Part shown: piece after piece, positions 5,071 to 30,079 of the stretch
How positions within the stretch are numbered: the first letter of the stretch is position 1
How the letters are laid out: each line of letters begins with the position of its first letter
NCBI GenBank assembly: GCA_002794465.1
Contig: MTSL01000117.1
Span: 64,375-96,374, forward strand
DNA: 32,000 nucleotides
Direction: 5' to 3'
Source: Paramicrosporidium saccamoebae KSL3
Taxonomy: Eukaryota; Fungi; Cryptomycota
Notes under the pieces: model-generated
What the model saw: the letters and a program-made list of their open reading frames with translations, nothing else
What the model was told of the DNA's origin: nothing
Databases searched by the model: none
Program-made: the position numbers and the translations under genes

Positions 5071-6364
5071 TTAACTATAAAGTGCTTTAAGTTCGGCAAT
5101 AGACTGCACGACGCTGAAATATGTACCAAACACCATGACCAAAAGACCCACGGCAATGTCGATGTAGCAAATAATCCTCTCTTTCATCGAAATCTTGTAC
5201 ATCTTGGACAGCCGCAGAAAATAAGTGGCTGGGAAGATGAACATGAGCATTGAGCCGCAGAGCGAAGTAAAGGCACCAAGGATGGGTAGCACAGCGTCCG
5301 CTGCGAACATGGCCACTACTGCGCATCCCGCAACCAATCCTCCCGTTATTCCAATGTTTCTTACTTGGCCATTTCCGCCCGCCGGCCCAATAGCCTTTGT
5401 CAACAACAAGTCCACACACGACTTTGTAGGATCACAGAGCAGCGGGAATGAGACGATGATCACACAGGAGACCAACAGCTGAGCAATGGCATAAGACAGA
5501 ATACTCTTGGCCAGTAGGATGTTGGCTGGCACTTGATCGCCAAAGTTGAGATATCCAAAAAGCGACACCAAAAAGTAAAAGAGCACAACAATCGTAGAAG
5601 AGCCTCCAATCATGGTCAGCCGCCTCTTGGCAGTGGGATTGATGAATGTAGGCACAATTGCCAAGAGTGTAAAGTGGTTGCAAAAGGCAAACAAAATGTT
5701 ACTGAAGGCTTTCAGTGCATCGCTGGACAGGTTGACCATGGTAAGAGTTGGCTTTTCCGCGGGGCTGCTGATCAAATAATCCACAGTAATCAATCCACAA
5801 ACAAAGGTCATGCAAAGCATTCCGACAATGCTTGCCTTGGCCAGCTTGCTCAGATCGCGGAGACAAGCCAGCGGGAAGATGAAGGCCGCACAAATGGCAA
5901 TGATGATTCTGCTGTTGGTATACCAAACTGCATTGGCCTCGACATTGAGTGCAAAGGCGAGGAACATTTGCAAGTACTTGGCCGTGTATGATGCGTAGGC
6001 AATCAGAGCACCAAAGAGGTACACCATAGTAGCAACGACGGCGGTAATCTCGCCCATTGAACCATAGGCTAGCCGACCTACCAGGAAATAGTCACCTTGA
6101 TCAGTGTGGGCAGCTATCCGGCCCAGAAGATAAAGGGTGCTCGTGGTAGCGGCCGAGCCAAAGAAGAGGAGTGCCAGTCCCAAGACGAGGCCTGCATTCT
6201 TCATAGAGTATGGGAGTGACAGGATTCCAACTCCAATGGCCGATTTGCACATGTTGAAGGCTCCAGAGGCCATCGAGATGGTGCGTTCGGGTGCTTTAAG
6301 TATAGGGCTATCCTATATAATCAAACACTACCTTCCTGGTATGTACACTAGCTTTACCGGTCAT
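5071..6364 (-). CDS. Amino-acid transporter, Aa_trans (AVT/SLC38-like) family, ~419 aa
   Basis: FNMCKSAIGVGILSLPY (TM1), FAFCNH, FGYLNFGDQVPANIL and ~11 hydrophobic segments. Model: exon 6364-6347 (MTGKAS), 34-nt intron 6346-6313 (GTAC...TAG), exon 6312-5071 in frame with the tracked ORF. Confidence 0.9.
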
Positions 6365-6480
6365 ATTCGCAAGTTTTGTAGTGGGCGCGTTGTGTTTTGA
6401 AGTAAACCACAAAACTATTTATACCCTTGTAGTTATAGCCGATGAGTGGCCATTGACCAATAGAAATGCGCCTCTATATA

Positions 6481-6489
6481 ATGACTCAT
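6481..6489. promoter_or_regulatory. Perfect Gcn4/AP-1-type site ATGACTCAT upstream of the amino-acid transporter
   Basis: Exact match to the Gcn4/CpcA consensus, ~117 bp upstream of the transporter ATG (6364), with a CCAAT nearby (~6458). Function is inferred. Confidence 0.5.
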
Positions 6490-6631
6490 CTAGCCGCAAA
6501 TGGCGTTCTGCCACCATAAAAAGATATATTTTAGACCCCAGTAATGAGGATTGGGGCCTTTTATATCCTATGTTGCGTAGTGGGGGCAAAGTCAGACAGA
6601 AGAGATGGGGGGAGGGTGATTAGGGACGGGA

Positions 6632-6695
6632 AGAGATGAGAGGAGATGAGATGAGATGGGATGAGATGAGATGAGATGAGATGCGATGCGATGGG
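6632..6695 (+). repeat. (GAGAT)n pentanucleotide microsatellite
   Basis: gagatgagaggagatgagatgagatgggatgagatgagatgagatgagatgcgatgcgatg. Confidence 0.9.
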
Positions 6696-6960
6696 GCGCA
6701 ATTAAAAGTGATGGGAAGAAAATTTGCCCACTGCTAGTCCCAAAATCGTAAGGGTACAAATCTCATTTCTAAAATATCTAGCTAATTATTCCACTCTGTC
6801 CCATGTTGTGTAACCACTTAGCTTGTGCTATCAGGTTAAAGACTGGCTTCTCATACAATACATGGATGTTTAAAACTATTTCATTTACGCGCCTTGGAAG
6901 CGTCCTTCCAAGATTGGATCATTACACAAAAAAGTTACAATTATCGCGTGAGTAGATTCT

Positions 6961-9564: not shown

Positions 9565-10660
9565 ATGAGCGAGGTCAACTTGGATGAGTATCGAGACGTG
9601 GATTTGCTTTTCCGAAAGAATCATGTTGGCTCTATCGAGCGGATGGTGCGCAAGCTGGAGTAACTTGCAAGTAAGAGTTTTGACAAATAGGGAAGAACGA
9701 AAGCAACTACGGCGTGACTTGAACAATCTTGTCGGGTAGACACCATTATATTTAATTTGTAGACAGAACTATGTCAAGATTCTAGAAGCCTCCTCTGCGG
9801 TAGATATGATGAGGGAGGCAGCCTCGGGGATTGACGAGCTACTGGCAACTTTGGATATTACCGTGGAAGCCGCCGAGGAGACGCCCATTGAGGCGTGCAA
9901 TGTAGAGAGTGATGGTTCTTACGAGGAGTATCGACAGATGTGGATCGAAATGCAAGATTCATGCTATTTAAAGGCCACTGAGATTATACAAAAGCTGTCA
10001 AAGGATGAAAAATTGGCAGAAGAGATTAGTCGGGCTCGTCGCATACTGTTGAAATTGTGTGAACGATGTATGCGGGACAGCAAGTCAGACGTAAAGTCTC
10101 TTGTGGAAGCAGTCAAAGCGATTGCACTCCTTGACAGCACCCAGCCCGCCACTGTATTTTACAGTGCCATTAGTTTAAACCCCGAATGTGACAATCTAGT
10201 CCTCGCAAACGGCATCCAGCGGATCCACGATTGTTGTTTAGCGCTGGACGTCCCAGCCGACTCGTTTCTGGATAGTGTCCTCTCCAAATTGAGTCTTGAG
10301 GGAGAAAAAGCACTCGGAGTGGCGATCAATCTTTATTCAAAGAACGACCATTCTCTGATAAAATCCATTGCGAGTCGGCTATTCAATCAGTGGGTGCAGC
10401 TGCTGCCCATGGAGGCAACCCTCTTGGACCTCTTTGTAATCAGCAAAATCCTCACAAGTGCCTCTGAATCGGCTTTGCCCTCGGAATGGATCTCTGTCAT
10501 CAAAGAAAAGCTGCCTATCCCGGTGCCATCAGAGTGTGGCCTATTAGTAGCGCCATTATTCGGCTGTCCAAGTGACACCCCACAGACAGATGCAGACGCT
10601 ATGGAGAAATTGTTCGTACCGATGGGACTGCCTCGAGTTCTTAAATTGCCCCTCTCCTAA
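9565..10660 (+). CDS. Vps51-family tethering subunit, most like COG1, ~345 aa
   Basis: Exons 9565-9659, 9691-9735, 9763-10660; introns of 31 nt (GTAA..TAG) and 27 nt (GTAG..TAG). Spliced N-terminus DVDLLFRKNHVGSIERMVRKLEEERKQLRRDLNNLVGQNYVKILEASSAVDMMREAA matches the spacing of the COG1/Vps51 helix (LF-30 aa-VG..Y..L.EA....M). Confidence 0.7.
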
Positions 10661-10671
10661 TACAGTTTAAT

Positions 10672-11307
10672 ATGTTCTGGTCCTGGTTCTGGCTGTTTTT
10701 CAGCACTGCTGTGGGCTGGACACTTTTACACGATAAGCTTATCCAAATCACAGAGCTGTCCACTCTGCGACTTGTTTGTCTGGATTGTATAGACGCTCCC
10801 GCTACCATCCATCAGGGTAACGAGTACATAGGAACGTCCTCGCTTATTGCAACCAACGAAACACGCACCTCTCCAGATGCCGTGTGGCTTGCGGATTCGG
10901 GTGGTACCTTTACCACTGAAGTTGGCGTTGGTCAACTGCACGTCGCATCGGATAGCAAACAGCTATGGTACCGCCTGGATGGTGTAGTGTCGGTCCATGA
11001 GGCATGTACGGTGGATCGCTATGTAGTGCCACTGATATTGAGACGCTTTGTGGAAGCAGTGGACGCGTGTCGGCAGAGAGGGATGGAGCTCGCAAATGTG
11101 CATTATGGGGATCAGGAGGTCATAAAATATCAACTTTGGAAATGTCTGCCCAAGAATACACAACTTTGGATTGCTTCGTTCGATCTGATCAAAGTCGACA
11201 AGCGACCTTGCCAGTGGCTAAGCACCTTTCCAGGTGTCAATTCAGCCATCAGTGATTGCGAACTATTAGCTTATCCACTGTGCTACGACCATTCCCTACA
11301 ATTGTAA
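10672..11307 (+). CDS. Predicted secreted protein, 211 aa, possible degenerate kinase-like C-terminal half
   Basis: ATG-started ORF with signal peptide MFWSWFWLFFSTAVG; fills the space between COG1-like (11-bp gap) and CUE3 (3-bp gap). Confidence 0.7.
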   Translation: MFWSWFWLFFSTAVGWTLLHDKLIQITELSTLRLVCLDCIDAPATIHQGNEYIGTSSLIATNETRTSPDAVWLADSGGTFTTEVGVGQLHVASDSKQLWYRLDGVVSVHEACTVDRYVVPLILRRFVEAVDACRQRGMELANVHYGDQEVIKYQLWKCLPKNTQLWIASFDLIKVDKRPCQWLSTFPGVNSAISDCELLAYPLCYDHSLQL

Positions 11308-11310
11308 GGT

Positions 11311-12637
11311 TTATTCTCGATTCATTAACACAAAATCACTGATAACGGAATCTTTTCGGGGCTAAAAATTAAACAATAAATGCAGTGTACATTTCGTTCA
11401 AACATGAGAGCCCAACCTTCAATTTGTTCATGCGACATTTTCAGCCTGCCTTCAAGGGCCTTTCTTTCCTTTGAATTTCTAACTTGTGATGATCTACCAA
11501 AGATGGAGGGATTTTTAATATACTCCCGTAAAAGATCCTTTTCAATTCCCGCAATCCCATCGGCATTCTAAAAAAGATGATAAAACCAACTTTGCATACC
11601 TTGCGGAGGTTGATAGGGGCAGCGGAAGAGTCAAATGTATCGACATACTCATCCTCATCGTCTGTGACAGTCAGTAGTCGTTCCAGATTTTTCTTCACAA
11701 ACGACTTGTCATCCAACAAAACGCCCATATCGTCAGCGCGACGACCCGTCTCTGCCTCAATAGCATGCTTCACATCTCCATCATGGCGATCAAGCATTTT
11801 CTGTGCATCCTCAACGGCAAGCTTTGGGAACGCAGTTATCAAAGAGTCTACCTTTCCACGCTCGGTGAGTGCGTGATCTAGGTCAGACGCAAGGCCACGC
11901 AACGCAGAGCAGTCACTGGATGCAATCAGGTCAGGAATAAAGCCAAGCTCACCATCTTTTTGCAGAATCACATCCACCAGCTCTTTTGTATTTATCCTAT
12001 CCCAAAACGGGAGCTGACCCAGCAACCGATACGAGCCAACAGCGACGGAAATGTCAGTAATCTTTCCAACTGCCACAATAAGGCTGGCCAGTGTTTCTAC
12101 TCCAACTTCTTCCACAGTGAGCATTGCTGCTCCCATCATTGCCGATAATAGCATGAAATCCTCCGCCTCTACCTCTTCCATATTAATTGAGTCTAGCAAC
12201 TGCACAAATTGCGTTCTTGCCACTACCACTTTGAAAAGCGACCTAAACAAGGCATCCCATTCACATTCTGGTAGCCTCCCCGCAAATTCTATCCATTGTG
12301 GCAAGTCCACGGCCCGTAGTAGTGCGGGACAGGGAAGCATCCGGATAGCCAGACGCGCCGTCCGTACGAGCAGTTCAGAATGCAGTAGTGAAACGTAATC
12401 ACGCTTCCAGTCCTCTGATATTGATGGCACCTCGTGGAAGAGAGCAGAGCTGACAAAGAGGATAAGACTGGCTTGAATGGCGGGGTCATTGAGATGCTCC
12501 TTAAAGGGTGTGGCTTTTAAACGAAGAATAAAGGAGACTTGTTCGTTGAGCAAATGGAGTTGTGCAGAATATGCATCCTCATCGAATACACTGTCACTGG
12601 GATGATGAATAGGGTCTATCCCTCTGAATAAGAGCAT
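11311..12637 (-). CDS. CUE-domain protein Cue3/ASCC2 (ribosome quality control trigger), ~421 aa
   Basis: Exons 12637-11600, 11567-11391, 11361-11311; introns of 32 nt (GTAT..TAG) and 29 nt (GTAC..TAG). CUE domain LITAFPKLAVEDAQKMLDRHDGDVKHAI; DEYVDTFD; spliced C-terminus ..KMSHEQIEGWALMFERN|PRK matches the ASCC2/Cue3 EQIEGW motif. Confidence 0.8.
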
Positions 12638-12693
12638 TGACAAATAATACTTTTGTTATTAATCTTAAATTCCTCGGCCAGATCTCGAGTCTG

Positions 12694-15600
12694 TTATTGG
12701 ATTGATTCAAAGCTCGAGATGGGGGAATCGTCCTTACGTGGAATGGGGGAATCGTCTTTACGTGGGATAGGGGAATTATCTTTACGTGGGATGGGACGGG
12801 CATCCGGACCAAGCTCTAGCTTTGCCCTAAGAGATACTATCTCATACGGGGTAAAGTTGATTACCCACGATCCTGAAACTTCCTCAAGCAGTGTCGATTC
12901 ATCGCGTTCCAGTAGATCACACCGCCGCAATGAGGCAATCTTTATCAATTGATGCGGATGGAGAGTGGCAATGCCACGGCATCCACGCGGCTCATATGCG
13001 CGTATAATGACATCGCCCGAGTCGTCCTCGGCCAGCTTAATGGCCTCAATGGCCAGAGGAACGGATGTGCAAGCTTCGTGTTTGGGACGACGCCATTTGA
13101 ATTGAAGTACCGGCGAATTCAGCCATCGTTCGTCGTAGAGGGAAGGCGAGGCAGCTGTCCATAAGAGCGGGGCGTTGAACTTTACAGCTTCTTCGATTAC
13201 TCCGCCATTGCATGCATTTCCCTGATGGGGGAACAATGCGAAACGCATCACATGACCGCCCATGTCGCAATTGTCATCGGGCATTTTGGGGGCTCTCAAC
13301 AGCGACAGCTGCATTAACGAGTCTCTCACAGAGTATCCGTATTTGCAATCGTTCAGGAGAGAAACCCCATAAGTAGGCTCAGAGAGATCTGCAAAAGAAT
13401 GTCCGCAGACCTCAAAACGAGCCACGTCCCAGGAAGTGTTAAAATGAGTGGGACGAGTAACAGTGCCAAATGGACATTCAAATGTTGCAAAATCTGACTG
13501 CACGGCGATGGGGAAATCTACTTTTAGGATACGATGGCTCTCATGCCATTCGATACGACAGGTAAAATCCAATCTCTTTGAGAGACAGGAGAGTGAGATT
13601 GCTTGGGTGATTAGAGAGGTTGGAGAGATTTTGATGACACGGAGCAAAGATACTAACAATGGACCTTCCATCTCAATACTGAGTTGTACGTCCGAGCCCT
13701 GCGAGATACACCATCCCTTTTCTAAATGGTGCAGCTCCACATCCCAGGCATCCCAGTAGTGTGGCACATCCTCATACATCATGAACCGATTCCCAACTGC
13801 CCCGCTACTAATCACTTCTCGCTCCTGTTCTTTGTCAAAGAAACTGGTCACATGGCCAGTCTCGTCAATATGCACACGCACAAATTTGTTCTCCATAATG
13901 TAATGCTCTTTGTTGCGCATGATTCGGGCAGTGTCTGTGGTGGACACGGGAATGCGACTTTGAGCAAAGGATGCCATTGAGAAGCCATTGACACCCGCGA
14001 CAGCCAATACCCCATGTTGGGGACTGCTGTCACTGCCGTCCCACGGAACAGTAATCACCTCATCCCGGACATACGGAGTCGTGTTGAAAAAGACGATTCC
14101 ACGTCCCTCAGAGCCTGGATCTACCTTTACATCGCCAGCCCTCTCTCCACTCGTCAGCAATGGTTCCGTGTCTTTGGAAGGTGTCTGTGATGGAGGCCCA
14201 ACCTTGTTTCCGAACAAATTGTTCATGGCATCATCCCGGATTTTCGAAGTATTAAACTCGGCATTTTGATACAATTTGTCAGAGTCCTTGTAAACTGAAC
14301 AGATGGAGGATCCCGGAAGGACATCGTGGAATTGATTCAAAAGCACATCCTTCCATAGTGTCTCCAACTGGTCCGATGGGTATAGCTTTTTCAAGCTATT
14401 GCTAACCACACCATTAATGACAGAAAGCATCTCGGCCTCTCTCAGCAATCTCTCGCATCGTCGGTTATAGTATTTGGTACGCGCCTGACTAGTATATGTC
14501 CCACGATGAAGCTCAAAGTACAACTCACCTCGCCAACGTAAGAGATTATGCGATTCTTCCTGCAAACGTTTGAAGAAGGATAATGGCGTGTCGAAGCGTA
14601 CCTCAGGCATTCCAGGAATGCCACTCATGCGTTCCAAACGACTAATCATTGCTTCGGTAGGTCCGCCGCCACCATCACCATGGCCATACAGCAGCAATGC
14701 ATTTGAGCTGCGATCGACATCCTTGTGATTAATTTCCGATTGGATAATGTCACCAGAAGTCGCCGTGGATGTGTAGGTATTGGCGGGAGGAAAGTGGGCC
14801 AGGACAGTGCTACCGTCAATGCCCTCCCAAACAAACGAAGAGTGGGGAAACTTGTTAATGTTGTTCCAGCTCAACTTTTGCGTCACAAAGTACTTCATCC
14901 CAGCCTTGGACATGAGTTGGGGCAACTGCGCATTATAGCCAAACGTATCTACAAGTCAGCAGGACATATCGGCCTACCTGGCAGCCAGAATATCTCACTC
15001 AGGCCCCCAAAATGCTCCATCATGAACTTTTGTCCGTAGAGGAACTGTCGGACAAACGACTCTCCACACGGAAGATTGCCGTCCATTTCGACCCACGATC
15101 CGCCCACCGGTATGAATCTCCCTTCCTTCACGTGGTCCTGGATTTTACTAAACAAGTCGGGATAATCCTGTCGTAGCCAGTCAAATTGCTGCATTTGCGA
15201 CGCAGCAAAGATGAATTTCGGGTGCTTTTCCATAAGGGCGAGTTGAGAGGAAAAGCTGCGTGCCGTTTTTCTGTGGGTCTCTTCATATCTCCACAACCAG
15301 GCAGTGTCAATGTGACAATTACCGACAGCGGTAATTACCATGGGGGTGGTGTGGGCATTCTTGGGTCTAAGGAATGCGTCCGAAATCTCTTGGCACTTAT
15401 TGACAGACTCTTCCACGCTGCCCAAGTCGGGTCGGTTGAAGTGATTAATAATATCATTTGCGACAAATAAGGCTCTTTTTCCTCGTGGATCGTCTTTGCC
15501 AAATTTCTCTGCCATCCCGTGCAGAATTTGTAGGTCATAGTAAAGATTCAGTGCTTCGGGGTTAAAGTGACGCAGATCATACTCGGTTACTTTGTAGTAA

Positions 15601-16097
15601 CGGTCCTCGATTGGGGGCTTAATGCTGTGGCCTTCCGAATTCCCGAACATCCAATTGCAAGCCATTTCAATATAAAAGACTACCGGTCCCTTTTTCGCAT
15701 CTGTCACTAGGCGCATCTCAAAGTCAACGCGATCCTGTGCGGCTAAATGGTCGGCTGAGAGGCCGTGTACTGGCCTGCCATCCGCTGTCCAGACCATACC
15801 CTCCGCCTGGCTCTTCCAATGAAACCAAGCACCCTCCAGATCACCTTGCGCGGTAATCCGGAACCAATGGGTAGTCCAAGACGGTCCAAACTCTTCTTCC
15901 AGCGTCGTCGCTTTGTACTCTGCCTCCCGTGCCTCACAAAACGTGACTCGTCGATCACCAGGACTCCAGACCTCTATTGTCAAGTCTTCCTTCCAGCTCT
16001 GCTTCACCAACTGTCCAACAATGTTCATCTCGCGCATGTAGTCTTCGGAAATAAACCGTTCAAGGCGACCATAGTAGATATCCCACTGCTTCTGCAT
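12694..16097 (-). CDS. AMS1: Alpha-mannosidase, GH38 (Ams1/MAN2C1 type), ~1124 aa
   Basis: Exons 16097-14978 and 14948-12694; 29-nt intron 14977-14949 (GTAG..GCTGAC..TAG) restores FWLPDTFGY. Also HIDTAWLW, GGSWVEMD, GDGGGGP, ELYFELHRGTYTSQ, NQFHDVLPGS, WDAWD, ARFEVCGH. Confidence 0.96.
12719..12795 (-). repeat. 24-bp tandem repeat x3 encoding PIPRKD(N/D)S at the Ams1 C-terminus
   Basis: Units at 12719-12742, 12743-12766, 12767-12790. Confidence 0.9.
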
Positions 16098-16147: not shown

Positions 16148-17446
16148 ATGTTCCTTGTCAGACGCCATCTCCATGTCTCCCGTCCGCTACATAAACTAGT
16201 GCCATTCATGCTTGCGGACATTGGTGAGGGGATTACAGAGGTAGAAGTGCTGCAATGGTAGATTAGACTACAAGATTAAATGCTTAGGCATGTGCAGGAA
16301 GGAAATGTAGTCCGACAGTTTGACAAGATTGCAGAAGTGCAAAGTGACAAGGCCACTGTTGAGATTACCTCTCGTTTTGACGGAATAATCAAGAAATTGC
16401 ATTACGAAAAGGGAGCCACAGCCAAGGTGGGGCAGCCACTGGTGGATATTGACGTAGAGGGCGATGTCAAAGAGGATGGCAAAGGGGATGGCCGAATTGC
16501 AATGCCGGCTGCAAAACTGGCGGAGAAGCAAATCAGTAATCCAGTGCGGAACATTGAAGTACTTAAACATCCGCCTGTGGAGAATTTGACCATCAAAGCT
16601 ATGCCGGGTGTGCGCCATTTCGCCAAGACTAACGGCGTGGATATTGGAAAAGTGCGACCATCGGGCAAATCCGGTCAAATAACCAAAGAAGATGTCCAGA
16701 AATCCATGAACGTAGCTATAAGGGCAAATGTGGATGCTGCTGAATACGAGCTGGTGCCGTTGAATGCTTTCCAGAAAGCCATGGAACGCAGCATGAAGGC
16801 TGCTCTGAATATTCCACATTTCGGTTTCCACGACGAAATTCTATTAAATCGTCTTTCTGGGCTCCGTACGAGTCTACTTCCGTCAATTGAATTGCGATAT
16901 GGAGTAAAGGTGACTGTCATGTCCTTTTTTATCAAGGCGCTCTCGTTGGCTCTCACTGACTATCCAGTACTAAATTCGCACTTTGACGAACCAAATCATT
17001 CTCTAAAGCATTACAGAGCACACAATATTGGGGTAGCAGTTGACACGGCCCACGGTCTGGCAGTACCCGTGATCAAGAACGTCCAAGATCTCTCTGTCAT
17101 CGAGGTCGCGAGGGAGTTGTCGAGGCTAACAGAGGCAGCGCGGGAGAACCGACTCAGTCAGACAGAGTTAGGAGGCGGCACAATTACACTTTCGAACATT
17201 GGTAGTATCGGAGGCACCACTGCCAGTCCTATTATTGTAGCACCGCAGGTTTGTATTGTGGCGGTAGGAAGGACGCAGGTCCTGCCACGATTTGATGAGA
17301 ATATGCAGGTGACAGCAAACAAGGTGATGCCGATTTCGTGGAGTGCAGATCATCGAGTCATTGATGGGGCCACTGTTGCCCGTTTCTCTGCTCGATGGAG
17401 GAACATACTCGAAGACACTTCGACACTTCTTCTCCACCTCTACTAA
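16148..17446 (+). CDS. DBT: Branched-chain alpha-keto acid dehydrogenase E2 (dihydrolipoamide acyltransferase), ~422 aa
   Basis: Exons 16148-16257 and 16288-17446; 30-nt intron GTAG..TAG. Spliced start MFLVRRHLHVSRPLHK (presequence-like), FMLADIGEGITEVEVLQW|HV, lipoyl motif VQSDKATVEI, peripheral subunit-binding domain (AMPGVRHFA..SGKSGQITKEDV), catalytic SADHRVIDG. Confidence 0.93.
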
Positions 17447-17503
17447 GTAAAGTTGCTATTATACCAAGAGTACCGGCACTTGTAAATGCATGATCGTCAG
17501 TCT

Positions 17504-17575: not shown

Positions 17576-17616
17576 TAATATGTCAATTTTTGACTGCTCA
17601 ATAAGCTCATGATCAC

Positions 17617-17699: not shown

Positions 17700-17710
17700 T
17701 CCCCATGCAT

Positions 17711-18779: not shown

Positions 18780-19850
18780 ATGGGAATCCTATGGTCACGC
18801 TCCCACTCGGATGACTACGAACGTATCCTATCCGACCTGACTACACGCATTGCCGAACTCGAGTCTCTGGTTGCTGACACGCGACATCGCTCCCGTCGTT
18901 GGTCCTTGTTCATCATATCCTATGGCACATTATTATATGTGCTGCATGCGATATATGTGTTTCTGTACCCGCGGGGTCCACCAACAGTGGCATATAGACC
19001 GTTGTTGGATGCAGTGGGACTAGTGATGGAGCCCGTTTTTGTTATTTATGCGAGGAGACTGGTAGTTTGGCTGTATTCCCGAAAGATTCATAATCTGGAA
19101 GCAACGTTGAGGTCGCTGCGAGCAAAGCAAAAATTAAAGGTTGTGCATGGCAATAGAGTTGATTTGTTAGGTGGAAGAGTTGAAAAAGGCAACTTCATAT
19201 TACAAGACAAAGGGCCTGGTGGAACGTTTTGAAATTGCCTCCGATGAAGGGGCGCCTATGAATTCCGAACCTATGCAGCCCGCCCCAAAACCTACAGTTG
19301 AAACGACAGAGCAGCAGCCATTATCGCCACCGCCAGCATCGCCTCCCCCGCCTCCACCCGCAGCCGCCCCCACTCCACTGACATGGCTTGATCGACTAGT
19401 TGATGCCATCATTGGCGACGATCGAAGCACGCGTTATGCTCTAATCTGTCCACGTTGCTTCTCTCACAACGGACTCGCTCGACCTGAAGAGTTTGAAATA
19501 CTCCGTACCCACAATATTCCTACTCATTTGTAGAATACGTCTGTCCACATTGTCACCATATGATCCTTCCTAGGAAAGAGTTGGGGAATGTAGCCAGCAA
19601 GGCGTCAAGTTCCGAATCCATCGCCAATGAGCCCATTTCCAACGAACCCATCTCCAATGGGTCCACCTCCAATGGGTCCATCTCTAATGGGTCCGCCTCC
19701 AACGAGTCCGCCCCCAAGCAGGACATCCCCAACGAGGCTGCTCAGGTTACTCCCAAACAGCCCAGCAGGACGGTACGTAGAAGGGGACGTCGAAAATCAC
19801 CGTCACCATCTCCGAAATCATCAGCTGCACTATCAGACTCGGATCAATAA
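18780..19850 (+). CDS. LNP1: ER junction protein Lunapark, ~336 aa
   Basis: Exons 18780-19139, 19171-19504, 19534-19850; introns of 31 nt (GTTG..TAG) and 29 nt (GTAC..TAG). MG start (myristoylation site), two TM segments, K|VEELKKATSYYKT, zinc ribbon RYALICPRCFSHNGLA...YVCPHC. Confidence 0.92.
19617..19706 (+). repeat. 15-bp tandem repeat x6 in the Lunapark tail (SIANE/PISNE/PISNG/STSNG/SISNG/SASNE)
   Basis: (T/C)CCA(T/C)(C/T)TCCAA(T/C)G(G/A)G-type units from 19617. Confidence 0.85.
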
Positions 19851-19875
19851 AGTTGTATACAACCAAAATCTGTTG

Positions 19876-21590
19876 CTATAAGTCATCGCTCATGATTATT
19901 GGATTATGTTTAACCATCGACAGGACGGGATGGGCTGGTACAAAATCCACATGGCCCAACGAATTAGCCACAATAATCTTGCCTAGCACTTTGTTGGTGA
20001 TGATACCTCTCTCTACCAACACTGCCATTCCCTGCAGATCGCCCTCCTCGCGCTGTTCCATGATGGCCTGCGCTCTTTTCGCTCCAATTTCCTTCAACTC
20101 TTTAATCTCCTTCAGTGTGCCGTAATTGAAAATTCGTAGCAATTCGGGCTCCACCAAAGGCATTAGCTGAACAACTTGGGGATCTAGTGGGTCGTCATTC
20201 ACCCTTCTTTGACGCGGTTTCCTGGGCTTTTTGCTCAATGGGCTGGTCGCTTCCATACGGAGCAGACTTTTCAAGTCGTTACCTTTGAGGAGAGGACTGA
20301 GAATGGTTCCCTTGGACATTTCTCGTAGTTTCTGGGCAACCTTTTCCTCAATCCTCTTTTCCAAGATCATTGTCTGTAGGGAACTTGGCTGGGAAGTATT
20401 GAATGGATTTTCCTTGGATTTTTTCGAATCCACTGACGATATTGTGGCAGGCGAAGAGCTTTTCACCCGCTTTCCTCTGTGCACCGTCTCCACATTATCG
20501 GAAATCCTCTTCCGCTCCTCAATCTGCTCGGCCAACTTGACATTATTCTCAATCAGCCTCGTCTTTGAGGCAAAATTCAGCGTATTATTCGTCTCCATGG
20601 TATCTGAAGACGCCACATTGGCAATGATCAGGGCATATGCATGTCCCCCGAGGGAATCTTGCAGTAATCGGGTGAGTTTGCTGTCACGATATGGGATGCG
20701 ACTGGCACCTAAATTGAGGGCATCAACCACTTGTCCCAGCACAAAGAGCGATTTGTTGATAGCGCCGCTCTCAATCAGCCGTTCTCCCGCATTGGCAGTC
20801 CGCCGATTGTCTTCCGATCCTGCCAAATCAATCAAATGCAACTTGACCCGCGTGTTCCCAAACGGCACTTGAATCGTTAAACACGAATGCGATCTGCTGG
20901 AATGCGCATTTAGCTTTGTTGCCGCAGTCCGACGATTTGCAATACCTCGTGACCATAGACGTTCAAATTCCCCCAGTGATGCCACACGGGTGACTGTCAG
21001 GTCAGGAATCAAAATCTGATGATTGGCGTCTTCTCGGATAGGCAAGTCAATAGAGGCGGGGTTAGGGGACAACAGGTCATACACTTTTTCCTTGTAGATT
21101 TCCAAGTAGGATATCCTCAGGTCAGTGGCCTGTGGGATGGGGCTTCTGTTTTGTCGCTTTGGAATCTCTTCCAGCAGATATTGCACTGTCAAAGGTATCA
21201 TTCCTACAAATTGGGAAAAAACATGGAAAGAGTACCCGGAGCGGCTAGTGTTCCCTCCATTGTAAAAGTCTTCCCCGCCCCCGTATTTCCGTAGGCAAAA
21301 ATTGTGGCATTGTAACCTGCCAATGTCCTCTCCACCACCGGCACCACATCAGTTGCAAATAGCGAAATCTGTGTCGACTCGGGTCCATAACACCCGTCGA
21401 ATGTGTATGCGAGCAATTCGGTGGGATTCCGCGGGTTAGGGAGTCGGGCTGTGCGGCCATGGAGGGTGAGCGCCGCATTCTTGGGCTCCTGCGCAAGTTT
21501 GGGACGTGCGCGGAGGATGGCGCGCACTGCTGCTGGGCCCGTTGGAGAGGCGGATGGGGAGAGACGCTGTGGTCCCTTTGCCGCCAACAT
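19876..21590 (-). CDS. Kinesin-10 / KIF22 (Kid)-like chromokinesin, ~560 aa
   Basis: Exons 21590-21236 and 21203-19876; 32-nt intron GTAC..TAG. Motor motifs FAYGNTGAGKTFTM, NAHSSRSH, LIDLAGSED, RIPYRDSKLTRLLQDSLGG; C-terminal helix-hairpin-helix (LKEIKELKEIGAKRAQAI). Confidence 0.88.
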
Positions 21591-21630: not shown

Positions 21631-22019
21631 TTATTTTACAGTGTTGGCATGATGGTTCAGCCAAGTATAGAATTGCTGTCGATGGATATATGCTATGCAT
21701 TCTGGGTCGCGAATCTGTCTCCGGAACGAGGCAAACTGCAACAGCTGCAGCATTGTCAATCCATTGGGATATCTAATAGATAAGCATGGTTGGTTTACGG
21801 GTACGTAAAGAAACGGACGTACTGCGGGTGGCCTAGGTACAACAAATACTCCAAATATGCCAGAAACTTGGCATCCTCCAATGCGCCCTGCTGCGACAAG
21901 ACTACCCCACATTATGCACCAGATTCCACAATACAGAGGAGATAGGCGGGATTGGCAAGACACTGCACAAATTCCAGTTCAAGGGCAAAGCGTTCCCTCT
22001 CCTGCACCGTCTTTGTCAT
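21631..22019 (-). CDS. MED31: Mediator subunit Med31/Soh1, ~107 aa
   Basis: Exons 22019-21935, 21901-21805, 21772-21631; introns of 33 and 32 nt. Spliced product RFALELEFVQCLANPAYLLFLSQQG...FLAYLEYLLY..HPQYVRFFTYPNGL.MLQLLQ..SFR. The reading frame stays open upstream to an ATG at 22184. Confidence 0.92.
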
Positions 22020-22263
22020 GACCAGGGAACCCTGATCTCGGACAATAAGGTTACATGCAGCGTCATGACATATAAGCGCAGACGCCGAATGGATGGCCAC
22101 GCTCTCCATGAATTCATCCGTCCATGATTTGCCTGTCGCATTGGTAACCTTCCAGGAGGCTGCACTCCTCATGATAATCGGCATCGTATTCTATTCATTG
22201 CTGGAAATATACATCACCCCACTAATCCTGTAAGTCTATTGCAATTCCGTGAAAATAAAAGAA

Positions 22264-22662
22264 ATGTTTTCGCTCATTGATCAACGATGGGCCGTTGTTC
22301 TGCTCCTGTTTGGACTGCTTCTCCTCTACATTGGATTGCATCCAAATCCCATGCTCTTCTCCAGACTCAATGAGCGGCGTCTATTGGGAATTGCTGGCGA
22401 TCATTGGCTTCACTTCTGGGCATTTTTTATTCTTTCGGGGCTCGTTCCTCGTGTAATTTCGCCACTGTCTGTTGCCTGGCTCATGCTAATTGCATTGGCG
22501 GTGGGCAGTGAGTTGCTACAAGGGCTTTGGCCATGGCGGACATTCGACCATTATGACATTTTGGCCAATTTCTGCGGCTTGCTACTCGGTAATGTAGCAG
22601 TTTGGCTAGTGACGCACCGCAACCATTCAGCGTTGGAACAGCATCCGATGAGCTTGGTGTGA
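22264..22662 (+). CDS. VanZ-like small membrane protein, ~132 aa
   Basis: DHWLHFWAFFIL, GSELLQGLWPWRTFDHYDILANFCG and ~4 TM helices. ATG at 22264; the track start at 22249 is GTG. Confidence 0.8.
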   Translation: MFSLIDQRWAVVLLLFGLLLLYIGLHPNPMLFSRLNERRLLGIAGDHWLHFWAFFILSGLVPRVISPLSVAWLMLIALAVGSELLQGLWPWRTFDHYDILANFCGLLLGNVAVWLVTHRNHSALEQHPMSLV

Positions 22663-22789: not shown

Positions 22790-23003
22790 TCAGAGCTCAC
22801 TCCCAATATGTAACCGTCCATTAGAGTCCACTTTCAGTGTACAACCATCCATTAGAGCCCACTTTCAATGTACAATCATTCATTAAAGCTCATTCCCAAT
22901 GTACAACCATCCATTAAAATTCACCTTCAATGTAAAACTACCCAAAGCTCACCTTCCGTGTACAACTAAGCTCACCTTCAGTGTACAACTATCCAGAGCT
23001 CAC
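22790..23003. repeat. Degenerate minisatellite, ~8 units of 23-31 bp, running into the cyclin stop codon
   Basis: TGTACAACCATCCATTAGAGC(C/T)CAC(T/C)TTCAA-like units; the final unit's AGCTCAC contains the cyclin TGA (23000-23002). Confidence 0.85.
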
Positions 23004-24135: not shown

Positions 24136-24879
24136 TTATATGGGTGGTAAGAGGGCAGATGGTCGGAATCTGGCCTCTGGAAACCGTTGCAGATACCAAT
24201 AAAGCGTACTCTGTGCCGAAATGTACAAATTGGCGCTGACAAAAGCTAGATTTAGCACCATCAGTGTTGACCAGCCAGAGAGATAAGCAAACCAAGCATA
24301 CATGGCTATTTCGAGCATATAATGTGGGCATAGGGTATATCTGAATTCAAGAAACAGATCACCGAGCGGTAAATACTCACCCTTTTGTCTGGACTCGTAC
24401 AATAGGCGATGCAAGTAATGCTGCCATATGTTCAGAGCCACTAAGGCTAGTGTAGCAATTGGATGGAATTGAAAGTGCACTTTGCAGAGGAGAAAGGTGA
24501 GCACCAAAACTGGATAATACGAAATGCCCACCAATCCATGGATAATGTGCATCCGACTATTCGCAGAATACGGCAACACAATGGTCTCTCCCATTCGTCT
24601 TGTCAAATGCACCAACAAGAGCCAGTCTTGTATTCCCTGAAAGGACAGTAGTGCTGTGGAAGCTACGATACCGACCATGTAGAAATAAGTAAAGTATTGC
24701 TTTGGCAATTGCAAGCTGCTGGACAAGGACACTTTGCCGTGCGTAACCAGCGGGTCGGTGAGATACGATTGTCTAAACGTGCACAGCAACATGCACAACA
24801 GTCCCACCAGGTAATAGCCGGCCACATAATCTCCAGTGACGTGAAATCCGGCTATATTGCATCCAGCAGTGTCCCACAT
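24136..24879 (-). CDS. DFG10: Polyprenol/polyprenal reductase Dfg10/SRD5A3-like, ~247 aa
   Basis: HGK, LPKQYFTYFY, HLTRRMGE, SRMHIIHGLVGISYY, QHYLH, CPHYMLEI, NLYISA..T..WY..RF: steroid 5-alpha-reductase family. First ATG at 24879. Confidence 0.85.
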   Translation of the reverse strand: MWDTAGCNIAGFHVTGDYVAGYYLVGLLCMLLCTFRQSYLTDPLVTHGKVSLSSSLQLPKQYFTYFYMVGIVASTALLSFQGIQDWLLLVHLTRRMGETIVLPYSANSRMHIIHGLVGISYYPVLVLTFLLCKVHFQFHPIATLALVALNIWQHYLHRLLYESRQKGEYLPLGDLFLEFRYTLCPHYMLEIAMYAWFAYLSGWSTLMVLNLAFVSANLYISAQSTLYWYLQRFPEARFRPSALLPPI

Positions 24880-24912
24880 AGCCACCGCGGTTCAACGTTT
24901 ATGTGTTATGAA

Positions 24913-27889
24913 TTACAATTTACAGAGTGCGGTGGATAGCTCTTCCAAACTAAACTTGCATCTGTGCGAGTCGAGTAGCTGGTGGAGCAAGGTTGAATCG
25001 CCGTCACAGACAAAGGACCAGATTGCAGCCTCGTCCATAGCATCGGCTTCTTCCAACATTTGGCAGACGGCACTACATCGGCCACTAACCGGACCATCCA
25101 ATTTAAGTGCTTTGACGTCTATCGGGTTAGTAGCGTCAATAGCAAGCACCTTGCTCCGTGACCATCATGAAGGAAGCGAGGATTTCTGACAATGTCGCTG
25201 GCGGAACCACAAATTTGTTCACAAATCCTTCCCTCTGGAGAATTTCCATAAAAGTCCAATCACGGAATGTGAGTATTTTGTCAGTCAGCTTGGAGATTAC
25301 CTCGTCCGGCGGGGTGTAGCCACGATCACGGGCAAGTCTTAGCAATCCACAGAACACCTATTTTTAGCCAAACGGCCCAATGGCTTACCGGAGTATTTCG
25401 ACTGTCATAAGATACTTCTAGCAAATCGGACAGTTCCTCCATCGCCAATGGATTCTCTGCATTAAATCCCTCAGCACTGCTTATGCGGAAGAAACTCCAC
25501 GCAACATCCACTTGGTGCGCAGAGACTGAGGCTTTGAACAGCTTTGGGAACGGGCCAAGAATCTCGAGTATGCGTGTCGCATCGGAGATTTCGATTCTCC
25601 TTAAGAAATTTGCCAGGCATTCGCGAAACGTCCTCGGTCCCAGCACTGACCCAAGCACTTCGGTAAGTTTGCGGTACAATAAATTTTGTTCAGCTTGTTG
25701 GGTCGTATTCAAAATTTCCAGGAGGAAAAGTTCAATCAAGAGCTTGAATTCACCAGCATGATCATCTCCAAAGGAACGCGAAATTGTTTTCGCCGTCTCT
25801 GAAAACTCGACAGCTGTTTGGACTTGGAGCTGCTGAAGGAGAAATGCCGGAATCAGCGATACTGTCTGGTTTATGGAGATTCTTTGCAAATTCCGCTCAC
25901 CCCAACCGAGGTGCGTGGATTGCTCCAATAGGGTGAGTAGTCCCCCAGCAATTTTGGGATAGAATGCACACGGCATACCATCCAATTCAAGCTTAAACTC
26001 GTCGGACTGTAGGAATGGCCATTTAATACATTGGACAGTCTTTCCAGCAACAATAACAACCCAAATTTGTCCTGATGGTTGCCATATGAAAAAATCATCC
26101 ACGTGAGTTGGCTTTAATATTTTGGCAGCAATATCCCGATGCTCTGCTTCCTCTCCCTGGGGTGGCACCAGCACCGAGAACAGAACTTGTCCCCTCTGAA
26201 CGACAAAGAGATGGAATTGCTTACCTGCATAAAGTGCGTTGGAGATGAAGGCAAACTTCCAGGCTGACGGATCGAGCGATGCGTCTGAAAATGACGTGAA
26301 CGAAGCAGAGATTAGAATTTCCATGCTGAATGGGCCTTTGTCGTAAGAAAGCTTGATGATCTGCAGAATAAACTCGCCTGATAGGATTCCCAGTTGTCCA
26401 TGGCCGCATGCGTTCAAGGCCACCACGTTTTTGCTTGCAACTTGTCGATGAAGGACATTTTTGATTCGCAACTCTGCCTTTGGGGATATAATCCAAAATT
26501 CACATTGCCCATTGTACATTCCGGACACGGCCAGCAGCTTTTCACTTCCACACTCTACCCACGTCATATGGTCCACAGTAAATTCTTGTTCCTCTCTCGG
26601 GTCACTGAACAATTTCCATCGTCGCTGCGACATGTGACATAAACAGAATCCTGTTTTCCCGGCAACGGCGACCCATTCACCGGTCGGATCAATGATCACA
26701 CGGCGGATCGGACCATTGAGCTTTCCTTGCATGTAGAGATCAAATGGGACATCGATTACTTCCCACAGAAAGGAATGGTCTCGAATACTAATGGCCGTGG
26801 AGTCATCTTCGGCGGCTTGAGCCGAAAAGAGACCTCGGGATATTCGGAGATGCATTAATTGGCCAGAACACTCCAAAAAGGCCAATTTCGAGTTGCACCC
26901 GCTGGTGATACCCAGTCGCGCCAGAGAATATTTGAAAATAAACTGTTCGCCTGAGATTGACTCGGCCAAAAGGAGGAGAGATGTTCCAACCGTACACATC
27001 AGAAAGCTCAACACTTTGGCAACGGCCCTCTCTGGCGAAAAGTCAATTCTCTGCACAAATGTTCCTTGTGAATCGTAAAACTTGACAACCGTAGAGTCTG
27101 CAATGGCGAGGAGATTTGACGTGATCCAAGCTACACAAGATGGCTCAGTATCAGCTTTGATCTTGGTGAGAATGGGCGCACCTAGCCTATGCAGATCTAT
27201 GACCACCACCCCCAATTCACAAATGTGGGCCAATAAGCCACGCTTCCTATGAATGTCAATCCGAGCGTCTGCCTCTTTCACAGTTCCCATGGGAATGAGG
27301 ATTTTTGCAGTACGGAGATCGATAACTCGTCCATCAGGCATGAAATATTCATAGACGAAAAACCCATCAGAGGTCATTTGTCCAAGACAGCCGTCCTTTG
27401 TCAGGACCAAGTTTGAAGATGTCGTGGCCGGCGACATTGGTGCATCGCCCGTTATTGGCCTCCCAACTCCATCAAGCGTGCAGTCAAACACCAAACTTAC
27501 TGACGGTGTGGCAAGTGTCATGTCTGAATGTGTATTGGTCTTGGAAGGCAGAACGGAGGTCGGAGTAGCGACTACCCGAAACCTGTCTGCTTTGCCATTC
27601 TGTGTCTTTACATCTACCGCATCCCCGTCCCACTTTTGCACCAACGCATATCCACCTTCAGTCTCATCTAGAAATGATGTTGGTCGTTCCTGATGTGCCA
27701 GTAAACACAATGGCTAAAACATTAACATGGGCCCTGCAGCCATACTGACAATGACCAGAGGGATACAGCCCGGGGGCCCACGGCTATGAATAATGCGCGC
27801 TTGGAATCGGGGCATTTGTAGAGAACAGAATATGTGCCGCAATCTAGGGTAGGCAGTTGAAGAACTGTAGGTGTGCCCACCAGGAACAT
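24913..27889 (-). CDS. RIC1: Rab6/Ypt6 GEF subunit Ric1, ~960 aa
   Basis: Exons 27889-27746, 27713-25389, 25357-25150, 25118-24913; introns of 32, 31 and 31 nt (the last GTGC..ACTAAC..TAG). RIC1-like N-terminus, WVAVAGKTGF.....RRWKLF....EEQEF, and a RIC1 domain (CLANFLRRIEI...PKLF). Confidence 0.8.
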
Positions 27890-27913
27890 TTTGGCTCCCG
27901 GGGTGCGGCGAGC

Positions 27914-28322
27914 ATGGATGAGCTATTCGACCTTCCTCGGTAATCCACCTGATCGTGTTGCCAATATTCGTAGAAAGTACCAAGAAGAAGGCTATCAGGA
28001 AGGTTTGAGCGCTGGCAAACGGCGGGGCTTTGAAGAGGGCTATATGCTTGGGGGTGAGGAGGGCGTCAAGCTTGGTCGGGAACTCGGCCAGATAGCCGGT
28101 CGACTCTTCCAGCTCCTCTCCCAAAACCCTCCAGAGAATACGGCCAGGAAGATTTCGAGGACGCTGCAAGAGATCCTGGCAGTGTCCTTTGCAAATCAGG
28201 AGGATTTGGAAAAGGAAGTGCGGATTTCCAGGATACGTGGTGCCTACAAGGAGCTGTCCACCATTCTAAATGTATCGATGCCAAAGTCTGTCGTATCAGA
28301 TAAGGCCAAGTTTGACTTTTAA
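27914..28322 (+). CDS. LTO1: Lto1/ORAOV1 (Yae1_N family; Fe-S delivery to Rli1/ABCE1), ~124 aa
   Basis: Exons 27914-27939 and 27974-28322; 34-nt intron GTAA..TAG. Product MDELFDLPRKYQEEGYQEG...GFEEG...G..LG.ELG; C-terminus RIRGAYKELSTILNV....F as in ORAOV1. Confidence 0.75.
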
Positions 28323-28535
28323 ACGGTCATGTAGATTTTAATAGACAAATATCGGTTATTCATATTGTAAAGTAGTGGAATGTTTAGCTGGGTGTTGAAT
28401 CTTCAATGTTTGGACATTCTATGCTGGTGAGCCCATACCAGTTGGTAATAAAGTTCCCTGTTGTCCATTTAAATTTATATTGACACCGTGGTATTACTCC
28501 TACCCTACCACGCCATAATACAACGGCATAGTGGT

Positions 28536-29437
28536 ATGGATGTGCCCGAGGAGCACGAAGCAATTGTCCACACCAATGACGAGGCCCTTTCTTGTAGAAT
28601 AGCGTTAGACATGAGCGGCATGTTTCCTGACCCGTTTGCCAGGTTATTCCAGCGACACGTCCACTACGAACCAACCTCTCCCCTCATACTTCGCGGTATG
28701 CAGCCTTGATTTTGATTAACCCCCTAGGAACATTTATTAGAACCAAGGCAATAGACAACGTACTGCTAAATATAGCGTCAACGGAACCGGTGCAGGTAGT
28801 GACGTTGGGAGCGGGATTTGATACGCGTTGGCATCGGCTCTATGATCAGTTGGCGAATGTGACGCGATATCTGGAGATTGACTTTAGAGAGGTTGTCCAT
28901 AAAAAGCAAAGGATCCTTGGTCAACAAATGCCCTCTCAGGATCCTCGCTATGCGATGGCAGCTTTTGACATGGAGCAGGATGACCAAGCGCTGTTGGAAT
29001 TTTTGCAGATTAATAGTCTCAGCTTGGGGGTCAAGACTATATTTATTGCCGAGTGCTTCTTGATGTATTTGGGTCAGCTAAGAGTCCAAAGGCTACTTAC
29101 GACATTGTCTATGCATTTCCCTATCGGCTCTCAAGTTATTCTGTATGATGCCGCTTTTATAGAAAATGACCGGTTTTCGTCATTTATGGTGGAGAATTTT
29201 GCCCGTCGCAATATCAGACTCGATCCTTTCTGGGTGCTCTCTCCTGAACAGATATGCAACGTGTGGGCGCCCGTCTGGACTACCCTCGATCTCCAAAACA
29301 TGAGCAATCTAGAGCAATCACCATATCTCACCGAGGATGACAAATTGATTCTTCGCACTCGGAGCATTCTCGACGAATACGAAGAATGGGCACTAGTCAG
29401 TTCCCATTACTACCTTGCAATCCTCAATAAACAATGA
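28536..29437 (+). CDS. PPM1: Leucine carboxyl methyltransferase Ppm1/LCMT1, ~289 aa
   Basis: Exons 28536-28695 and 28728-29437; 32-nt intron GTAT..TTAAC..TAG restores SPLILRG|TFIRT. Also QVVTLGAGFDTR, EIDF, AECFLMYL, LDEYEEW..VSSHY. PPM1 versus PPM2/TYW4 is judged only by the lack of a Kelch tail. Confidence 0.85.
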
Positions 29438-29802
29438 ACCCGGCTACCGCGAATCCTGTTACATCACGGAGGGAGGGGGGAGGGTTGGATTGAAAAGGCG
29501 CAATCAGCCTGTCTTACACGCTGAATGCACAGTCGGTTGATTGCTTTGTATTTTGAATGCACAAGATTCTTTATTGGGATCCCTAACCCGTAATTATATC
29601 ATCTCACACTAGCTGGGAGGTTAGTAATAAAAGTTTGCTAAACAGTACCCACTTGTTATTGGCGAGTCCGACCCAGCTAGTAATCTCACAAACCATTCCT
29701 ACGATATTATGCATGGCTGCCTATATGCCACATACTATAATACAACTAATTCGCTCATCAATAGACCCTTTACTGGAATCCCTGAGTTGTAATTATATTA
29801 TC

Positions 29803-30079
29803 TCACAACAACCTCAGTCGTTTGGATTGTGGAACAACTGGCTCGTCAATGCTTCCCGCGGTTGAGGGGAGGTGAAATGAAGAACTGCGGAGGGGCGTGC
29901 GGTAGAGCTGGATTGTCGTGGCGCTGGTACTAGGTGGGGTACACGGAGTAGCAGGCATTTCGGACGACCAGTGGGACCCAGTGACCGCCGGTGCAGAGAT
30001 TCTATACATCAATGGGAGTGAATCCGTACATTGCGTGGCGGATGCAGCTCATGTCCTCCAGAACATAGTCGGGCAACAT
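29803..30079 (-). CDS. Putative 82-aa disordered microprotein (two exons)
   Basis: ATG 30079, candidate 28-nt intron 30029-30002 (GTAC..TAG) that joins in frame to the tracked 29803-30012 ORF; no homology recognised. Confidence 0.4.

Follow-up and report, generated by a model that had tools for sequence, protein, structure and literature searches.

Micro-introns of 27-36 nucleotides with GTA...TAG ends in Paramicrosporidium saccamoebae and their apparent absence from public gene models

Paramicrosporidium saccamoebae, placed in Rozellomycota, is an intranuclear parasite of amoebae and sister to Microsporidia (PMC5701793). We analysed 32,000 nucleotides (nt) of its contig MTSL01000117.1 (GCA_002794465.1), here called the window, in which a contig position equals the window position plus 64374, and widened the intron tally to 51 kb of the same contig in a 7.3-Mb genome. 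Genes of this region are interrupted by introns of 27-36 nt that nearly always begin with GTA and, in every case found, end with TAG. Very probably these are ordinary U2-type GT-AG spliceosomal introns that have been compacted to near the minimum workable size. At the level of sequence, we established where the introns begin and end, which signals they contain, that their positions are conserved in relatives and that the public annotation fails to model them. The compaction fits reductive evolution in the lineage of Rozellomycota and Microsporidia.

An original prediction, made from the letters of the window, had listed 21 introns. To escape its search bias, stop-free segments with coding potential were listed first. 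For each pair of adjoining segments, every frame-restoring GT-AG solution was enumerated with neither GTA nor TAG required, and the choice among solutions was made by independent evidence from homologues, a syntenic relative and Pfam. Raw counts of GTA..TAG patterns were discarded, since coding sequence is poor in TAG and the counts therefore say little. Choosing boundaries by coding potential alone was also dropped, since it gave 50 nt for the intron of the Ams1 alpha-mannosidase gene and a wrong donor in the P4-ATPase gene, which homology corrected.

The 51 kb contained 31 introns, about 0.6 per kb of genome, with 32 nt (seven introns) and 31 nt (six) as the commonest lengths. All 31 had GT...AG ends; the donor was GTA in 28, GTT in two and GTG in one, and the acceptor was always TAG. 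Twenty of them lie in the window, with lengths of 27, 28, 29 (four), 30, 31 (four), 32 (six), 33, 34 and 36 nt, 18 GTA donors, one GTT (19140), one GTG (25119) and 20 TAG acceptors. The original prediction therefore stood in most respects: 20 of its 21 introns were re-derived with matching lengths, although one of its two 34-nt introns could not be identified; its two non-GTA donors correspond to the GTT and GTG donors; the four introns it quoted as multiples of three in length (3n) do start with GTA and end with TAG; and the narrow length class with near-invariant ends and exclusively TAG acceptors is real. The 11 introns beyond the window were placed by conserved motifs in genes for a UBC4/5-type E2 (UBC; two), a stomatin-like Band_7 protein (one), a P4-ATPase (four), a phosphoglucomutase-family protein (PGM; two), a class-IV aminotransferase (one) and a mitochondrial DNA polymerase (one). 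For the polymerase the placement is tentative and follows an alignment to yeast Mip1.

For 18 of the 20 window introns the splice boundaries were supported by homologues or by uncultured relatives in which the position of the intron and the sequence of the exons are conserved. Gapless alignment to solved structures was obtained at the junctions of kinesin, RagA (three), Med31 (two), the 2-oxoacid dehydrogenase E2, the leucine carboxyl methyltransferase (LCMT1) and Ams1; with the two UBC junctions, placed by motif, this gives 11. The kinesin junction product, TFTMEGTLAAPGMIPLTVQ, aligns without a gap to KIF22. Splicing of the gene g5 brought together a contiguous Vps51/Exo84/COG1 N-terminal domain (PF08700) across both of its junctions; Pfam matched none of the unspliced open reading frames (ORFs). 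With the spliced RagA protein as query, an uncultured relative (56% identity) was found on three near-identical syntenic contigs, L004, L005 and L006 (JGI 3300037657, 3300036987; Logan SRR12926096). The window and this relative have in common the gene order steroid dehydrogenase, cyclin, VanZ, Med31, kinesin, lunapark, RagA, E2, Ams1, g6 and g5. Together with L010 (Logan DRR438482) and L007 (Logan SRR14610251), these contigs of Paramicrosporidium-like metagenome organisms are syntenic with more than 17 kb of the window, with protein identities of 56-69% for the better-conserved proteins and 25-50% for the others. L010 had no DNA match to L004; it may come from another organism or be a piece that does not overlap L004.

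Six introns (kinesin, E2, both of g6, RagA site 2 and lunapark site 2) are exactly absent from the uninterrupted ORFs of the relative. Since these ORFs read exactly as the spliced products, six boundaries are fixed to the base. A further 11 intron positions are shared with relatives, eight with the syntenic relative and the three of RIC1 with L010; the intron sequences differ, their form is similar and the flanking exons are conserved. The 12 introns found in the relatives are 31-41 nt long and use TAG nine times, AAG twice and CAG once. Since their acceptors are less strict, the invariance of TAG, judged from these sequences, looks like a tightening specific to P. saccamoebae. One of the 12, the Ams1 intron at L005:9861-9899 (plus strand; 39 nt, GTAAAG..ACTAAC..ATAG, phase 1), is 3n and stopless, and its branch site is a perfect ACTAAC; the ORF caller had rendered the intron as 13 extra residues within the invariant FWLPDTFGY motif.

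By our hand counts, the 5' splice site carries little information past GTA. At +4 the bases were C in 12 introns, T in eight, A in seven and G in four, and G occupied +5 in only 12 of 31, so that a strict donor of the microsporidian type was not found; nor, with 31 introns in 51 kb, is the genome intron-poor. Alignment at the 3' end showed strong enrichment of A at -8 (17/31) and -9 (18/31), flanked by T-rich positions. The pattern T.A[CT] with its A at -8 or -9 occurred in 13 of the first 22 introns, compared with 2.3 in composition-preserving shuffles, and again in six of nine later, held-out introns, compared with 0.73 expected; over all introns the count was 19 of 31 versus 3.0. The usual forms of this branch-like motif were CTGAC, TTAAT, CTAAC, TTGAT and TTAAC, and one intron had TACTAAC. 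In 20 of 30 introns a branch-like A stood 8-9 nt before the 3' end, and in most introns it was 21-25 nt from the 5' splice site. There was no real pyrimidine tract, merely three to four T-rich positions (-7 to -5). In 28 of 31 introns no AG occurred in the 10 nt preceding the AG used. UBC intron 1 and P4-ATPase intron 3 pass over a TAG that directly follows the branch-like motif, 5 and 7 nt before the acceptor they use. These results contradict the statement of the original prediction that most introns have no clear branch point, and they do not support definition by length and terminal triplets alone: a degenerate T-N-A-Y stands at a fixed position and is followed by a short T-rich spacer.

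Eight of the 31 introns (26%) are 3n, which is not a depletion (p = 0.45 against one third). All eight contain an in-frame stop, compared with 15 of the 23 non-3n introns (65%). The claim that every 3n intron carries a stop thus held for four of four in the window and eight of eight in 51 kb, mostly owing to the letters of the splice sites. The stop is the donor GTAG or GTAA in phase 2 in g5 intron 2, the E2 intron and P4-ATPase intron 3, and the acceptor TAG in phase 0 in RagA intron 1, both PGM introns and P4-ATPase intron 2; only in Med31 intron 1 is it internal, a TAA within CATAAT. At a rate of 65%, about 2.8 of the eight would be expected to be stopless (0.65^8 = 0.03). Their absence mostly arises because GTA(A/G) and TAG supply stops mechanically, as they do in seven of the eight, and the evidence for selection by nonsense-mediated decay (NMD) against stopless 3n introns is suggestive at best. 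Hidden introns of this kind were sought in two ways. Ten orthologous proteins aligned to the relative (about 4,300 codons) revealed no P. saccamoebae insertion with intron-like ends; insertions of 5-21 amino acids (aa) relative to its proteins were coding-like, without GT-AG ends, and were rejected as hidden introns. Open coding frames totalling 12,495 codons contained 10 (3n), 10 (3n+1) and 11 (3n+2) GTA...TAG strings that were 27-36 nt long; of these, 0, 0 and 3, respectively, had the branch motif. From the string counts and the alignments together, hidden stopless 3n introns are unlikely.

An explanation that dispenses with a branch signal would have the introns recognised by length and the terminal GTA and TAG, with NMD as proofreader and stopless 3n introns selected against as in Paramecium. 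We consider this unlikely. The low information past GTA, the narrow length range and the stops in all eight 3n introns, together with the absence of hidden stopless candidates (P about 0.03), are what it would predict, and in 14 of 31 introns (hand count) the acceptor TAG falls in the frame of the upstream exon, compared with one third expected, which is not significant. However, the branch-like motif is positional and was replicated, 3n introns are undepleted, and seven of the eight 3n stops are donor or acceptor letters. The relative has a stopless intron in Ams1, and splice-site-embedded stops are known in Yarrowia, which has ordinary introns (PMC2911113).

The other explanations concern the acceptors or the introns themselves. 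An ascertainment artefact, by which a search for GTA...TAG at ORF breaks would have overlooked CAG acceptors or other lengths, is very unlikely. Relatives do use CAG and AAG, and NCBI models hold 50-nt CAG introns in kinesin (21186-21235) and g5 (10637/10616-10665), but TAG was not imposed on our enumeration, the choice was made by homology, and homology contradicts both models. The kinesin intron would delete GMIPLT, found in KIF22 and in the relative, and the g5 intron, which fuses g5 to a downstream ORF, would remove a C-terminus that is conserved in the relative (...FVPMGLFRVLKLT there, ...FVPMGLPRVLKLPLS in P. saccamoebae). The steroid dehydrogenase and Aminotran_4 models contain what look like long introns but are explained by separate genes, a 31/48-nt CAG intron at 33568 (outside the window) would likewise link two separate genes, and nine further introns beyond the range of the original prediction all end with TAG. 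It is highly improbable that the invariant TAG reflects only the base composition of AT-rich introns, with no splicing preference. The introns have 37% GC compared with 48% in the window, and T is their commonest interior base (35%), yet with an interior T/(T+C) of 0.65 the chance of T at -3 in 31 of 31 introns is 1.4e-6, and relatives with similarly formed introns use CAG and AAG. It is extremely improbable that the interruptions arose from errors of assembly or decay of pseudogenes, or that they are sites of programmed frameshifting, given GT-AG ends in all 31, a single size class and a shared internal motif; 11 share their codon position with introns of independently assembled relatives that differ in sequence and resemble them in form, and removal restores gapless alignment to distant homologues.

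Several observations weigh against reading all 31 as one class of compacted U2-type introns. The branch-like T.A[CT] pattern was first picked post hoc from the data, though it was replicated. RagA intron 1 is without the motif, and several introns have it at -10 to -14. For the elements at 6313-6346 and 30002-30029 the basis is the reading frame alone or weak evidence. P. saccamoebae has a 120-nt intron in RPS23 elsewhere in its genome, the only point for which the organism is cited in the RPS23 paper (PMC6349667), and the length class is therefore not universal. The spliced proteins were missing from a collection of 15 billion proteins, which also contained no transcript-derived (Logan) versions of them and in which each NCBI protein formed a cluster by itself.

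The compacted U2-type introns share an architecture of 5' GTA, a spacer of about 20 nt, a degenerate branch-like T-N-A-Y with its A usually at -8 or -9, a short T-rich spacer and TAG. In the mechanism that we propose, the branch site would be recognised first, and the acceptor would be the first TAG at least about 7 nt downstream of it, a ruler-like choice of the 3' site. The narrow spacing of 21-25 nt between 5' splice site and branch would stem from the steric minimum of the spliceosome. Recognition would then need a GUA, a minimal branch site and, a fixed short distance away, a UAG, and the length window would follow from steric limits. As the ends of the introns are GTA(A/G) and TAG, many introns, if retained, would halt translation at once; the embedded stops are a by-product of the splice-site letters, whether or not selection has acted on them. 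A bolder form of this idea, which we put forward as possible but tentative, is a simplified "ruler" spliceosome in which 5' recognition involves only GUA, an obligatory UAG follows 8-9 nt past a minimal branch site with no polypyrimidine tract, and both splice sites carry stops. It may have followed loss or alteration of U2AF/SF1-type factors. If so, any retained intron would end translation, scaling 31 introns in 51 kb up to the 7.3-Mb genome would give about 4,000-4,500 introns of this kind, almost none of which a standard gene finder would see, and an intron-rich, signal-poor state would lie right beside the intron-poor, signal-strict Microsporidia.

Ultra-short spliceosomal introns are already known; the class in P. 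saccamoebae is undescribed in its genome paper and was missed by the annotation. Its introns resemble those of the microsporidian Encephalitozoon cuniculi in their GT-AG ends, their length of a few tens of nt, a branch site near the 3' end and the stop or frameshift that every retained intron would yield. The E. cuniculi introns measure 22-76 nt, have strict motifs and are few (PMC3629993, PMC6349667), whereas those of P. saccamoebae are denser, their donor is degenerate after GTA and their branch motif is merely T-N-A-Y. Two introns of about 30 nt in RPS23 of Rozella allomycis have been mentioned in passing, with no signal analysis (PMC6349667). They belong to the same clade (Rozellomycota/Cryptomycota) and share the length of about 30 nt, premature stops and the lack of strict microsporidian motifs. 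By analogy, the nearest comparison is with the short microsporidian and Rozella introns, which would mean reduction within the lineage. The likeness to Paramecium, put forward in the original prediction as convergence with ciliates, is convergent only in form. Paramecium introns have GTA...TAG-type ends, and the likeness extends to a very narrow length class and to stops in 3n introns, but the lineage is unrelated and its introns are shorter and very AT-rich. In Paramecium tetraurelia introns are about 25 nt and stopless 3n introns are counter-selected, according to PMC5014332 and to Jaillon et al. 2008 as cited in PMC2911113. The depletion there is genome-wide and accompanied by NMD knock-downs, whereas here n = 8, the effect is marginal and 3n introns are not under-represented. 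Splice-site motifs also create premature stops by phase in Yarrowia lipolytica (PMC2911113), where a GTAAGT/GTGAGT donor in phase 2, a branch-site TAA and a phase-matched TAG acceptor each give in-frame stops; its introns, however, are much longer, and their main acceptor is CAG, with TAG at about 10%. According to PMC3629993, strict splice signals go with intron-poor genomes. In the sister lineage of Microsporidia the combination is reversed, with many very short introns, weak 5' signals and an invariant TAG. The order of events in microsporidian intron loss thereby becomes testable, and P. saccamoebae offers a natural non-ciliate system for asking whether splice-site-embedded stops are selected or incidental.

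The public annotation of P. saccamoebae comes from MAKER; Augustus had been trained on Rhizopus oryzae, and Trinity transcripts served as evidence from expressed sequence tags (PMC5701793). RNA-seq of the organism exists, in the form of a stranded poly-A library of strain KSL3 with about 73 million read pairs of 2 x 125 nt (PMC5701793). The words "intron" and "splic" occur nowhere in the main text of the genome paper (PMC5701793), and we found no description of the class of about 31 nt in the literature searched. The micro-introns appear to be modelled correctly in none of the checkable NCBI/MAKER models of the 51 kb. Affected model spans in the window are 9565-11307, 11441-16097, 16280-17446, 17711-18463, 19876-21590, 21912-22172 and 24136-27815. 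The resulting proteins are truncated for RagA (250 aa, without the N-terminus and its P-loop), E2 (388 aa, lipoyl domain cut) and Med31 (86 aa), and PJF18509.1 (Kinesin-like protein [Paramicrosporidium saccamoebae], 554 aa) lacks the motor-domain motif GMIPLT. Gene spans and product lengths revealed six fusions of neighbouring genes, namely Ams1 with g6, RIC1 with the steroid dehydrogenase, g5 with ORF211 and, outside the window, a borealin-like gene with the aminotransferase (Aminotran_4), the P4-ATPase with SAC3, and a kinase with the DNA polymerase. The P. saccamoebae proteome has been used for phylogenomics and for inferring gene loss at the root of Microsporidia, and it should be re-annotated with introns allowed down to about 20 nt. 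Genes in the window are densely packed. Very short intergenic spacers occur at 10660-10672, 12643-12696, 19850-19876 and, outside the window, 33580-33625; the stop codons of kinesin and lunapark are 25 nt apart, and 50 nt separate the Ams1 stop from the g6 ATG. Such short spacing probably contributes to the fusions.

The introns of the window are described below in order along it, with strand and phase. In the amino-acid transporter gene, the candidate intron at 6313-6346 (minus; 34 nt, GTACAT...TATAG, phase 0) would join a first exon of six codons (ATG at 6364) to the ORF. It is the sole frame-compatible GT-AG solution, and the Pfam Aa_trans domain begins upstream of the annotated ATG; no homologue spans the junction. 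A well-formed element of 34 nt at 6828-6861 (minus; GTATTG..TTTAAC..GATAG) lies about 100 nt downstream of the stop of a gene of 783 aa and joins no convincing ORF. It may be the second 34-nt intron of the original prediction, or an intron in an untranslated region. The gene g5 has intron 1 at 9660-9690 (plus; 31 nt, GTAACT...AATAG, phase 2) and intron 2 at 9736-9762 (plus; 27 nt, GTAGAC...TGTAG, phase 2), whose positions are kept in the relative at L005:14552-14587 and L005:14468-14506, respectively. ORF211 (10672-11307, plus; 211 aa) starts 11 nt past the g5 stop. Pfam gave no match for it, and the relative has nothing equivalent at the syntenic site; it is either a lineage-specific gene or no gene. 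In g6, intron 2 is at 11362-11390 (minus; 29 nt, GTACAC...TTTAG, phase 0), where the uninterrupted ORF of the relative reads MFERNPRRDAVISD and P. saccamoebae reads MFERN|PRKDSVISD, and intron 1 is at 11568-11599 (minus; 32 nt, GTATGC...TTTAG, phase 0), across which the relative is continuous and gapless. A 35-nt intron at 12616-12650 that would fuse Ams1 to g6 was rejected as unneeded, since the g6 start MLLFRG is conserved.

The Ams1 intron (14949-14977, minus; 29 nt, GTAGGC..CTGAC..TGTAG, phase 1) splits FWLP|DTFGY, and the relative has its 39-nt intron at the same place. The E2 intron (16258-16287, plus; 30 nt, GTAGAT...CTTAG, phase 2) lies in the lipoyl domain; the spliced protein is gapless to PDB 1k8m, and the ORF of the relative reads EVEVLQWHVKEGN. 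RagA/Gtr1 has three introns on the minus strand. Intron 3 (18456-18484; 29 nt, GTACAA..CATAAT..GGTAG, phase 2) splits WDCGG|QD in gapless alignment to human RagA, and its position is also occupied in L005 (32 nt) and L007 (32 nt). Intron 2 (18552-18583; 32 nt, GTATTT...TATAG, phase 1) is likewise gapless to RagA, and the relative reads LAPTMRVDRQ there. Removal of intron 1 (18684-18719; 36 nt, GTACTG...TGTAG, phase 0), at whose site the relative has a 37-nt intron, restores the protein after MTERK. The lunapark-like gene has intron 1 at 19140-19170 (plus; 31 nt, GTTGTG...GTTAG, phase 0), which joins KQKLK|VEELKK and whose position is shared with a 36-nt intron with an AAG acceptor in the relative, and intron 2, inside the zinc ribbon, at 19505-19533 (plus; 29 nt, GTACCC...TGTAG, phase 1), where the continuous ORF of the relative reads EEFDTIQYLCPSC.

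The kinesin intron (21204-21235, minus; 32 nt, GTACTC...TGTAG, phase 1) lies in the motor domain, and its removal keeps GMIPLT. Med31 has intron 2 at 21773-21804 (minus; 32 nt, GTACCC...ATTAG, phase 2), matched in position by a 39-nt intron of the relative, and intron 1 at 21902-21934 (minus; 33 nt, GTATTG..CATAAT..GGTAG, phase 1), whose in-frame TAA is inside the branch-like motif and whose position is shared with a 32-nt intron with an AAG acceptor; both junctions are gapless to human MED31. In RIC1, intron 3 is at 25119-25149 (minus; 31 nt, GTGCTT..TACTAAC..GATAG, phase 1), intron 2 at 25358-25388 (minus; 31 nt, GTAAGC..GCTAAA..AATAG, phase 0) and intron 1 at 27714-27745 (minus; 32 nt, GTATGG..GTTAAT..TTTAG, phase 0). 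L010 keeps their positions, together with the exon downstream of intron 3 (CSAVCQMLEE...), the exon sequence at intron 2 (41 nt in L010) and exon 1, ending in GPRAVSLWSL, before intron 1 (31 nt in L010). A PDB search with the RIC1 N-terminus gave no match. A 72-nt intron upstream of the steroid dehydrogenase was rejected, since translation from an in-frame ATG yields an N-terminus like that of the relative, and the ORF upstream belongs to RIC1 as its last exon. The leucine carboxyl methyltransferase intron (28696-28727, plus; 32 nt, GTATGC..GATTAAC..CCTAG, phase 1) is gapless at its junction to human LCMT1 through PLILRG|TFIRT. In an unannotated low-complexity ORF with no Pfam match and no homologue, frame and motif suggest a candidate intron at 30002-30029 (minus; 28 nt, GTACGG..TTGAT..TATAG).

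The DEAD-box ORF at 3503-4843 is intronless. A gene for a VanZ-like membrane protein (22249-22662, plus; 137 aa; PF04892, E = 1e-6) lies outside the called NCBI genes and is conserved at L005 2315-2755. Rfam matched no small nuclear RNA and no other RNA in the window or in L005. Directly upstream of the window is an assembly gap, a run of N at -206..0 (contig 64169-64374). Tandem repeats occur in the window at 562-787, 6633-6693, 12718-12795, 17486-17701 and 22812-23003; the C-terminal repeat region of Spt5 is built of 30-nt units, (GAGAT)12 precedes the amino-acid transporter gene, 24-nt units at the Ams1 C-terminus encode PIPRKDxS repeats, and two arrays are intergenic.

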